A stretch of DNA of 64,000 bases from Adineta vaga (taxonomy: Eukaryota > Animalia > Rotifera). Under the pieces are notes generated by a model. It was not told where the DNA came from. It searched no databases and saw only the letters and a list, made by a program, of their open reading frames with translations. Both the position numbers and the translations under genes were made by a program. Location: positions 12,214,001 through 12,278,000 of the forward strand of contig CP075492.1 in the NCBI GenBank assembly GCA_021613535.1, in the 5' to 3' direction. Shown here piece after piece: positions 21,648-23,258 of the stretch; the stretch's first letter is position 1; the number at the start of each line of letters is the position of its first letter.

Positions 21648-21706
21648 TTAGCCATAACAAGCAGCACCTATGGCTTGAAATTCTTCCAAACTTGCACAAA
21701 AACGTT
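21648..21706 (-). CDS. Neuropeptide terminal exon C: (K)RFCASLEEFQAIGAACYG*
   Basis: cctttttatag|AA CGT TTT acceptor in phase 1, Gly-stop amidation signal, AATAAA on the minus strand at 21572-21577. Confidence 0.82.
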
Positions 21707-23258
21707 CTATAAAAAGGAAAAAAGAGAACCTTTAGTTGTTTCAGTTTTTTTCGTCAGACCGAAAAAATAAACGTGTACAGAAAACATACATAGATTAAGG
21801 TGCAGAACGAACGGTAAGTAAAACAAGCAACAAAATAAAATATGAAACATACACATTAATGTGAATAATATTGCTGACTGACACATAAAGAGAGAGAGAG
21901 AGAGAGAGAGAAGGGAAGAGAAGTAAGCGACGATAAATGATTGCTATTGGCACCCACTCACATATTATCGACCAAGTAGGAATATGAAAAGGAAGTAAAA
22001 CGTTATGTTTGACTCAAGCAGATTTTGGGAATGAATAGCAAGAAATTGAAAGAAGAGAAAAAGAAAGTTTAATGGTAAAGGACAGGTAAATCGGTTGATA
22101 TAAATGCATCATGCTGGTGATGTTGAGGATATAGAGGTGAAACATTAGCCACATGTAGCTCGATCTGGATTCATTACATCTTCATATGAATTACAGAAGG
22201 TTATGAAACGTTCTAAAAAAAAAATATATCTCGATTGCAACTCAATCTAAACGATTTTTTTCTTCTTCAAACAAATAGGTTTATGTGTATAAATATATTT
22301 GCTTTATGGTATTAGAAGTTAATCAAGCAATTGAATCTAGTTTGTTAGAGCAACGTCAGGATGATTCATCTTCTTATATGTGTAAGAAGAAAAAGACTTT
22401 CGATCTAATAAGATTGATCAGCGTTAGGTTTTATGCAAATAAATGTGTTAGATATATAATAAAACAAAAGAAATTGCGAAACAAAAACAACGAACGCTTT
22501 ATCATGTTTTTTTCGATGATGTTTATTTTCTTTTTTTTAGTTTTTATAAAGTATATTTGTATAATTTGTTACCGTGCATTCATACAAATATTGAAAGTAA
22601 TAAATATAATAGATGATGAAAAAGAAAATGATGAATAAAGCATTTAGTTTGAAATCATTCGATATCATTCGTACATTGACTAGATGAAGAAGATCTGATC
22701 TTTAATGTATTGCACGTCGACGACAAAGAGATCCATTCAACATATCTTGAAGACTACAGTATGTGAAGCGTTCTAAATAATAAAGTGCAGCAAAAATAAG
22801 CTCATGCGTGTATTAGTGATTAAATAAGCAATTATGCATTTTGTATTAGTTGAATAAGAATAGTAGCAAAGAAATGAAGTCTCTTACTTTTGACATCTTC
22901 AAAATGACCAGAATCAGAACCATGAACAGATTGAAGATATTCGCGGATCTAACAATAAACAAATCAAAGACTTTGTTTTTCTTCGAAGAGAAATGATTTT
23001 TCTGCTAACCAATTTTCGTTTTAAAAAATTTTGTTTATCACGTTTTGCAGCTCGCTGTTCACTATTTGATGTCAGGAGAAAATGACGTAATTTATCTAGA
23101 TTATACGCTCGACGTTGTTCCTGTATTTCGTCATTTGATGAATCAACCATATCATCATTTTGTATTAATGTTGCTTGTGAAAATCGAAGTGATGCTATGA
23201 AAACGAGCACGAATAATAACAAAGCAAATTTGTTCGATAATGAGTAGGATTTGAACAT
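21648..23258 (-). CDS. Neuropeptide/prohormone precursor with three alternative terminal exons
   Basis: Shared exons 23010-23258 and 22888-22948 encode a signal peptide and RR/KR sites and end ..FEDVK-A with a phase-1 GTAAG donor. Terminal exons are 22702-22772, 22145-22212 and 21648-21706. Confidence 0.88.
22145..22212 (-). CDS. Neuropeptide terminal exon B: (K)RFITFCNSYEDVMNPDRATCG*
   Basis: tttttag|AA CGT TTC acceptor in phase 1, Gly-stop amidation signal, ATTAAA on the minus strand at 22068-22073. Confidence 0.82.
22702..22772 (-). CDS. Neuropeptide terminal exon A: (K)RFTYCSLQDMLNGSLCRRRAIH*
   Basis: tttag|AA CGC TTC acceptor in phase 1, TAA stop, AATAAA on the minus strand at 22522-22527. 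Confidence 0.88.

Follow-up and report, generated by a model that had tools for sequence, protein, structure and literature searches.

A probable prohormone gene in Adineta vaga, a bdelloid rotifer, with three alternative terminal exons for predicted cyclic peptides

In the beetles Nicrophorus and Aleochara, the final coding exon in the gene for allatostatin-CCC is duplicated and each copy has a separate acceptor (Veenstra, 2019; PMC6585902). Use of the upstream acceptor in these genes leads to a longer mRNA containing both peptides, of which the second is blocked by an in-frame stop (PMC6585902). Similarly, in the DH37-DH47 gene of Tribolium and Aethina and in beetle DH31, one 5' coding exon is joined to two or three duplicated exons (PMC6585902). 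In the calcitonin/CGRP gene, Fox-1 and Fox-2 bind UGCAUG at positions -34 and +45 of the calcitonin exon, thereby blocking SF1 at the branch point and silencing this proximal exon (PMC2777236). In the present work, we describe a gene on the minus strand of a 64,000-nucleotide (nt) stretch of genomic DNA from Adineta vaga, a bdelloid rotifer (contig CP075492.1, positions 12,214,001 to 12,278,000), which is referred to as the window and from whose first letter all positions are counted. It is in all probability a small secreted prohormone-type gene, in which two shared exons are followed by one of three alternative peptide exons, the choice being made among acceptors in transcripts that read through the exons lying downstream.

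The evidence on the transcripts of this gene comes from Logan contigs of four runs from four studies, which were aligned to positions 21300-23600 of the window. These runs had been labelled RNA by guess, and as their contigs hold spliced joints, they are indeed RNA; strand, exact ends and rare isoforms are not resolvable from such contigs. The parts of the gene are the following:

23259 to 23298, minus strand: 5' untranslated region, minimum extent, an RNA contig of X11 extending to 23298.
23010 to 23258, minus strand: coding part of exon 1, with the ATG at 23258 and 83 codons (from translation).
22949 to 23009, minus strand: intron 1, 61 nt, GT..AG, the joint 22948|23010 being read in all four RNA runs.
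22888 to 22948, minus strand: exon 2, 61 nt, encoding IREYLQSVHGSDSGHFEDVK plus a single A (...FEDVK + A), its phase-1 donor being common to all forms.
22803 to 22807, minus strand: GCATG element, candidate Rbfox-type silencer, 35 nt upstream of the acceptor of exon A.
22702 to 22772, minus strand: exon A, alternative terminal coding exon, KR-FTYCSLQDMLNGSLC-RRR-AIH-stop, not amidated.
22522 to 22527, minus strand: AATAAA after exon A, through which RNA contigs read (in X2, unbroken from 22772 to 22183).
22144 to 22212, minus strand: exon B, alternative terminal coding exon, KR-FITFCNSYEDVMNPDRATC-G-stop, which gives the predominant form in bulk RNA.
22068 to 22073, minus strand: ATTAAA after exon B, through which RNA contigs read (from 22212 to 21936 and onward).
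21648 to 21706, minus strand: exon C, alternative terminal coding exon, KR-FCASLEEFQAIGAAC-Y-G-stop, lying within the 3' untranslated region (3' UTR) of the A and B forms.
21543 to 21577, minus strand: AATAAA in the distal position (21577-21572), with the likely shared 3' end close to 21543, where a contig of X1 ends.

A pyrimidine-rich AG stands before each of the three mini-exons, which all open with AA-CGY-TTY and encode KR-F...C...C followed by a stop; the peptides are of 15-19 residues and the Cys-to-Cys loops of A, B, and C of 10, 13, and 12 residues, respectively. The coordinates, reading frames, phase-1 junction, exon starts, and loop sizes that had been put forward in the first-pass annotation of the window all match the sequence, as does the poly(A) motif that it had assigned to each exon (hexamers at 22527, 22073, and 21577). 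The string AG|AACGNTTY occurs four times on the two strands of the window, and three of these occurrences are exons A, B, and C, located within 1.1 kb on one strand. The three-exon pattern is not due to chance, since all other loci of sufficient length show these exons again in the order A-B-C, with a decayed exon A in one of them. The single phase-1 donor (...K + A) would join any one of the three acceptors, and each of these would complete a Lys-Arg, followed by a two-Cys peptide of 15 to 19 residues and a stop, giving one gene with three C-terminal peptides.

The splicing of intron 1 and the use of acceptor B are both seen directly in the RNA. Intron 1 was spliced out in all four runs, and the joint of exon 2 to exon B (22888|22212) was likewise read in all four, at the greatest depth of any form (about 90 in the two largest runs). 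In X2, X8, and X11, this joint contains an A-to-G variant at position 22890 (Lys to Arg), its two sides being separated by the letters TTC; this A/G polymorphism alters the residue directly before the cleavage site. For exon A, the contigs of X1 and X2 stop exactly at the acceptor (22772) with two additional letters that have no match at this place in the genome, the intron sequence upstream of it (22773-22887) has no RNA cover at all, and the cover from exon A down into exon B is unbroken, at a depth of about 12. Two such letters would be expected of a contig that continues into exon 2 and breaks at the polymorphic base 22890, and the exon 1 contigs break likewise beside another variant (23226). 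Based upon these contig ends and the uncovered intron, splicing of exon 2 to exon A is very likely. The exon A sequence of run X1 differs from the genome at three positions (22705, 22711, and 22723), of which two are synonymous (Cys, Ala) and one is a His-to-Gln change in the tail after RRR.

In the distal part of the gene, unbroken RNA cover reaches from exon B across exon C as far as about 21543, 29 nt beyond the distal AATAAA. The transcripts would thus run to the distal poly(A) site, the choice lying mainly among competing 3' splice sites, and selection of an upstream acceptor would carry the downstream peptide sequences along as untranslated RNA. The locus had been described in the first-pass annotation as a set of tandem alternative last exons, and of this description the alternative endings stand; in bulk RNA, however, they behave as nested alternative acceptors and not as self-contained last exons, as the transcripts read through and share the distal 3' end. 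The choice could alternatively be made mainly by polyadenylation, each exon using its own poly(A) site in the classical calcitonin/CGRP style, and in keeping with this a poly(A)-type hexamer follows each exon, contig depth is about 85 over the exon B region compared with 24-47 distally, and one run shows a gap in cover after the exon A signal. However, both upstream signals are crossed by unbroken contigs (from 22772 to 22183 in X2, and from 22212 to 21936 and on to 21543 in X1, X2, and X8), the 3' UTR of an environmental B-form mRNA is at least 613 nt long, and the beetle allatostatin-CCC precedent is one of acceptor choice with read-through; we therefore consider it unlikely that the choice is made mainly by polyadenylation. 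A (CT)n run located between exons B and C (21874-21921) interrupts the RNA contigs.

To what extent this arrangement is shared by other loci was examined in the A. vaga genome (100.8 Mb assembly, 6 contigs) and in other bdelloids. A search of the genome with the exon 1 protein found a paralog on contig C6 and one weak match at chance level, and nothing else. The C6 paralog is diverged, its inter-exon DNA being unalignable with that of the window, and it has nevertheless kept exon 1, exon 2, and all three mini-exons, including the AG, phase, KR-F start and both Cys residues, the RRR of exon A and the Gly-stop of exons B and C. Further loci, which were gathered using the propeptide as a probe and then scanned uniformly, came from A. 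steineri (two paralogs), A. ricciae, Rotaria sordida, ENA and Logan assembly contigs, and JGI and other environmental contigs, the species names following the public records. The order A-B-C was observed in every locus of sufficient length, comprising 14 complete loci (the window included; L010/L011 and L015/L016 are near-duplicates) and a 15th in which exon A has decayed. In this last locus, the C6-type copy of A. steineri (L005:4485-4550), exon A lacks both Cys residues (FTNYSIQDILQRNRRTIDK) and exons B and C are intact, as if this paralog had lost or altered one of its three products.

The acceptors, phase, Cys pairs, and endings also recur across loci in both of the ancient paralogs, and each exon has its own pattern across species: [FL][TNS]YC[ST].[QE][DE]...LC-RRR for A, ..T[FY]C..[YSF]..[ED]D...AC-G for B, and FC[AS][ST]...F....C[YLF]-G for C, the latter being replaced by ...CYMSK/CYMWK in one clade. 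For exon C, the acceptor, phase, KR, Cys pair, and stop are kept in every locus that reaches this exon, and the Gly-stop in most of them. The ...CYMSK or ...CYMWK endings (L014:6356, L015:4416, and L026 at 1671 on the reverse-complement strand) are confined to one bdelloid clade, and these peptides would lack amidation. As both paralog types are present in Adineta and Rotaria, the triplication is older than the split of the paralogs and the divergence of these genera. The paralog split looks like the ancient bdelloid genome duplication, and the tandem exon duplication that gave rise to A, B, and C would have preceded it, because all three exons are found in both paralogs.

The sequences surrounding the acceptors are also conserved. 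The last 25 nt before each acceptor show conservation well above the background farther upstream, a feature typical of regulated exons; the pyrimidine tract of the exon C acceptor is the strongest of the three. Additionally, a GCATG is present in intron 2 in 11 of 15 loci, compared with 0.26 expected from shuffles, and its offsets are conserved (seven window-type loci have it at -32 to -35 and four C6-type loci at -50 to -53, with one outlier at -93). It adjoins a downstream ACTAAC-like branch-point sequence, and a second GCATG is located at +34 inside exon A in many loci. An Rbfox-type protein bound at GCATG may silence exon A in some cells; the position of the element tentatively suggests such a silencer of acceptor A, which we regard as possible rather than probable. 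Other copies of this motif were also noted: the window-type paralogs (the window, A. ricciae, and A. steineri) have one some 30-40 nt past the stop of exon B, which in the window is found at 22044-22048, about 98 nt past the start of exon B; and those within the ends of exons B and C are accounted for by Ala-Cys codons.

Comparison of the coding sequences shows that all three mini-exons have been constrained as protein. When the C6 copy of A. vaga was compared with the A. steineri or R. sordida copy, exon B differed by six synonymous changes and no non-synonymous change, and in exon C eight of about 9.7 synonymous sites had changed, compared with one of 38 non-synonymous sites. For exon A, the ratio of non-synonymous to synonymous change per site (pN/pS) was about 0.1-0.4 in most pairs. 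Conservation of the mature peptides greatly exceeds that of the spacer that precedes them. As the changes are mostly synonymous, A, B, and C are all translated sequences, and for exon C the only evident route is translation from the exon 2 donor, because its phase-1 start completes a Lys-Arg. The possibility foreseen in the first-pass annotation, that only exon A is ever spliced and that B and C are not conserved, is not borne out, exon B being spliced in all four runs and the coding sequences of B and C being kept under purifying selection in Adineta, Rotaria, and other bdelloids.

The existing gene models for bdelloids contain different subsets of these exons. The NCBI A. vaga protein I4U23_014685, a "hypothetical protein" of 126 residues, consists of exon 1, exon 2, and exon A only, and its first 83 residues are identical to the exon 1 product. 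Of the two A. steineri paralogs, one is modelled with A or B and the other with C, and in Rotaria the models contain A, B, or C; hence, the prediction made from the window that automated annotation would keep a single exon has held, with the choice varying among assemblies. In A. ricciae, one gene gives both an A-form (P0067) and a C-form (P0068), which have the same N-terminus and contig and of which the longer product alone is indexed, and in R. sordida the B and C forms lie within one gene; the gene ranges of both species stop exactly at the exon C stop. The annotations of A. ricciae, R. sordida, R. socialis, and Rotaria sp. Silwood-1 all contain C-form isoforms. BRAKER is not known to add alternative transcripts without support from hints. 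The annotations of A. ricciae and R. sordida were produced by BRAKER with RNA sequencing (RNA-seq) data from each species (PMC7943196), and their C-form models would provide indirect support for real exon 2-to-C junction reads.

Transcripts of the B-form are also known from other bdelloids. JGI contigs of about 1 kb from three different bdelloids (P0062, P0064, and P0073) contain uninterrupted exon 1-exon 2-exon B frames, and because of these frames they are spliced B-form mRNAs; in one environmental B-form mRNA, the 3' UTR extends for at least 613 nt. Another observation on an environmental B-form mRNA contig (L017:1-5) is that it begins with AAGAG, which we take to resemble the end of the bdelloid spliced leader, and this mRNA may be trans-spliced.

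A number of points weigh against the interpretation of this locus as a prohormone-type gene with three products selected at the acceptors. Of the splice-selected set of three that had been proposed from the sequence, the B joint is read directly in all four runs and the A joint stands by inference from contig ends, and a joint of exon 2 to exon C is missing from all four contig sets of A. vaga, which is weak evidence as contigs lose rare forms. In bulk RNA, B is the main form and A a minor one, at contig depths of about 90 and 12, which are only a rough guide to isoform ratios. A C-form transcript was not found among transcript-derived proteins, in searches that included a homology search with the A. 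ricciae C-form, which recovered one additional spliced B-form (P0073). An exact-pattern scan of metagenome contigs also gave no spliced exon 2-to-C junction, which has little weight as that collection holds unspliced genomic copies only. A search of the genome for an Rbfox gene with Pfam Fox-1_C was without a match, which is uninformative as its controls were silent too. Lastly, a Pfam scan of the full products and peptide B with E up to 10 yielded no relevant match and no known neuropeptide family.

With regard to exon C, the lack of an exon 2-to-C joint in the four runs and of a C-form among the transcript-derived proteins, together with the cover of this exon by contigs that are continuous with the exon B 3' region, could mean that only A and B are used and that C is a relic duplicate within the 3' UTR, conserved for a role at the RNA level such as that of a UTR regulatory element. 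This explanation appears highly improbable to us, as the change in exon C is mostly synonymous (eight changes vs. one non-synonymous in the comparison of the C6 copy described above), its AG, strong pyrimidine tract, phase, KR, both Cys, and stop are kept in every locus that reaches it, and C-form isoforms are present in the RNA-seq-guided annotations of A. ricciae and R. sordida. We infer the use of exon C with exon 2 from this coding conservation and from the isoform models of other species.

The predicted products have the features of prohormones that enter regulated secretion. The exon 1 product has a signal-peptide-like hydrophobic N-terminus ending in ...SQA, followed by an acidic spacer and several dibasic sites (from translation); KR/KKR precedes each peptide, RRR follows A, and a Gly-stop follows B and C, and these features are kept across loci. 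Peptide A, with a loop of 10 residues, would be freed by cleavage at RRR; peptide B, with a loop of 13 residues, would end in a Cys-amide, and peptide C, with a loop of 12, in a Tyr-amide. Convertase cleavage, disulfide formation, and amidation are predicted here by sequence rules, a neuronal role being putative, and cleavage and amidation are plausible because the genome carries convertase P-domain and Cu2_monooxygen genes. Exon 1 also contains a conserved segment, LRHFLLTSN.EQRAAKR, with dibasic sites on either side. Conservation within the precursor is highest not in a terminal peptide but in this segment (exon 1 residues ~52-73, at 23040-23104 on the minus strand), which comprises some 21 residues (..Y.L.KLRHFLLTSN.EQRAA), is bracketed by RR and KR, and could be a further peptide freed from all three isoforms or a sorting element.

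The family to which these peptides belong could not be assigned in the first-pass annotation, and this remains so, as there is no Pfam match and their ring sizes and residues fit none of the families that were compared. The allatostatin-C/CC/CCC peptides need six residues between the Cys and the core C-[YF]-F-N-[PA]-[IV]-[ST]-C-F, which is absent here, and the allatostatin-CCC of bdelloids (...RMLCFFNTVTCFG; NP-HMMer supplement) is a different gene. For CCAP ([PF]FCN[AG]F[TI]GC, with five residues between the Cys), peptide B matches only in F-C-N and the C-terminal Cys-Gly, its loop being of 13 residues, and the bdelloid CCAP precursors (...KRFFCNGFIGC...) are separate genes. Calcitonin/CGRP peptides start with a C-x5-C ring, continue as a long helix, and are amidated at the C-terminus; the ring here spans nearly the whole peptide, without a tail, and no Pfam match was found. 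The urotensin-II ring is CFWKYC, and MCH has a C-x8-C ring with an MLGRVYRP core; these cores are absent from A, B, and C, again with no Pfam match at E up to 10.

An exhaustive profile search recovered 43 cluster representatives, all containing the LRHFLLTSN.EQRAAKR propeptide as the profile core, and every species-named representative among them is a protein from Adineta or Rotaria; the prohormone family is so far restricted to bdelloid rotifers. The precursor strings are absent from the NP-HMMer rotifer supplements, and no paper describing this peptide family was found in the literature. The language-model neighbours in the ESM Atlas are generic peptide-hormone precursors (at most 0.90) that indicate no family and serve as a lead only, a urotensin-2B cluster being one of many weak neighbours. 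The lack of homology to any known neuropeptide family and the restriction to one lineage would also suit a gene with the same layout whose peptides are not neuropeptides or hormones and instead are secreted antimicrobial, defensive, or reproductive peptides from gland or epithelial cells. We regard such a role as rather unlikely in view of the dibasic sites, the C-terminal Gly before the stop in two of the three peptides, the presence of one C-terminal peptide per precursor and the very strong conservation of the mature peptide beside a variable spacer, which are traits typical of regulated-secretion prohormones; the language-model neighbours, with the limit just noted, are also almost all peptide-hormone precursors.

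Two genes in the vicinity of the prohormone-type gene were also noted. One is a single-exon G protein-coupled receptor (GPCR) gene at 16044-17057 on the minus strand, encoding 337 residues of a very divergent rhodopsin-class receptor (Pfam 7tm_1, E 1.5e-10). Its matches in a PDB sequence search (serotonin and bombesin receptors, rhodopsin) were all weak, and no ligand class can therefore be read from them. In A. steineri (63% identical), A. ricciae, and two further bdelloids, the peptide gene likewise has a 7tm_1 receptor linked to it, which by linkage only makes this a candidate receptor. The other is a convergent plus-strand gene, whose last exons are located at about 21300-21620; RNA shows an intron at 21320-21369 (GT..AG), its stop is at 21555, and AATAAA occurs at 21588 and 21594. 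This gene shows homology to the SNF-family (sodium:neurotransmitter symporter) gene that is found downstream of the peptide gene in A. steineri, A. ricciae, and R. sordida, and its 3' end and that of the peptide gene overlap by about 75 nt. On the other side, (TA)n runs occur upstream of the peptide gene at 23470-23506 and 23612-23636, and a similar TA run is found upstream of the C6 paralog and of L006.

The rotifers and their gnathiferan relatives, which have been called the "next frontier" for peptide signalling (Thiel et al., 2021; PMC8557429), are the least sampled of the spiralians in this respect. The NP-HMMer survey of rotifers reported arthropod-like families only, and the gene described here adds a lineage-specific family that homology-based surveys have missed. 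Of its three products, current bdelloid annotations give a single one or vary among assemblies in the one given, and in A. vaga the annotated form (A) differs from the main form in RNA (B). Because transcripts using an upstream acceptor hold the downstream peptides in their 3' UTR, exon probes or read counts over B and C cannot separate the isoforms, which are distinguishable by junction-specific assays only. The conserved GCATG offers a testable tie between Rbfox-type splicing control and peptide choice outside vertebrates. A broader picture, which we consider doubtful when all of its parts are taken jointly, would be that of an undescribed, bdelloid-wide family of cyclic hormones, whose three paralogous ligands have been distinct since before the genome duplication and are chosen cell by cell through an Rbfox-type GCAUG silencer about 34 nt before the first acceptor, convergently with calcitonin/CGRP, the linked orphan GPCR being perhaps the receptor.

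The layout of a signal peptide, a propeptide, a basic cleavage site, and one C-terminal peptide with a predicted disulfide ring is that of the somatostatin, allatostatin-C, urotensin-II, and MCH precursors, whereas the ring sizes of 10, 13, and 12 and the ring residues fit none of them. The vertebrate calcitonin/CGRP gene is similar in that a downstream exon picks the peptide and that GCATG is found both upstream of and within the proximal exon, the Rbfox link between the two being positional only. It differs in that calcitonin exon 4 uses its own poly(A) site and in the N-terminal C-x5-C ring and long amidated tails of its peptides, and there is no sequence relationship. From the DH37-DH47 and DH31 genes of beetles, too, as many as three hormones arise that have the N-terminal part of their precursor in common, but these are diuretic hormones of the CRF-like or calcitonin-like type, which are long and linear, lack a disulfide ring, and belong to an unrelated family. 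A close likeness is that to beetle allatostatin-CCC, with which the bdelloid gene has in common a shared signal-peptide part, a duplicated short two-Cys peptide exon, separate acceptors, and read-through, as the contigs show. The features of such Veenstra-type genes are all present, namely shared 5' coding exons and paralogous peptide exons that each have their own acceptor, the same phase, and their own stop, and more than one acceptor is used (B by its direct joint, A through contig ends, and A, B, and C isoforms in RNA-seq-guided annotations). However, there are three copies here compared with two in the beetles, the beetle peptides belong to the allatostatin-C family with six residues between the Cys, and bdelloids carry a separate allatostatin-CCC gene. 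Additionally, the beetle duplication is recent and patchy, whereas that of the bdelloids appears older than their genome duplication. The design of the gene is therefore already known from the beetle genes, and what is new is the phylum, the undescribed peptide family, the age of the triplet with its strict conservation across the apparent genome duplication, and the conserved GCATG.

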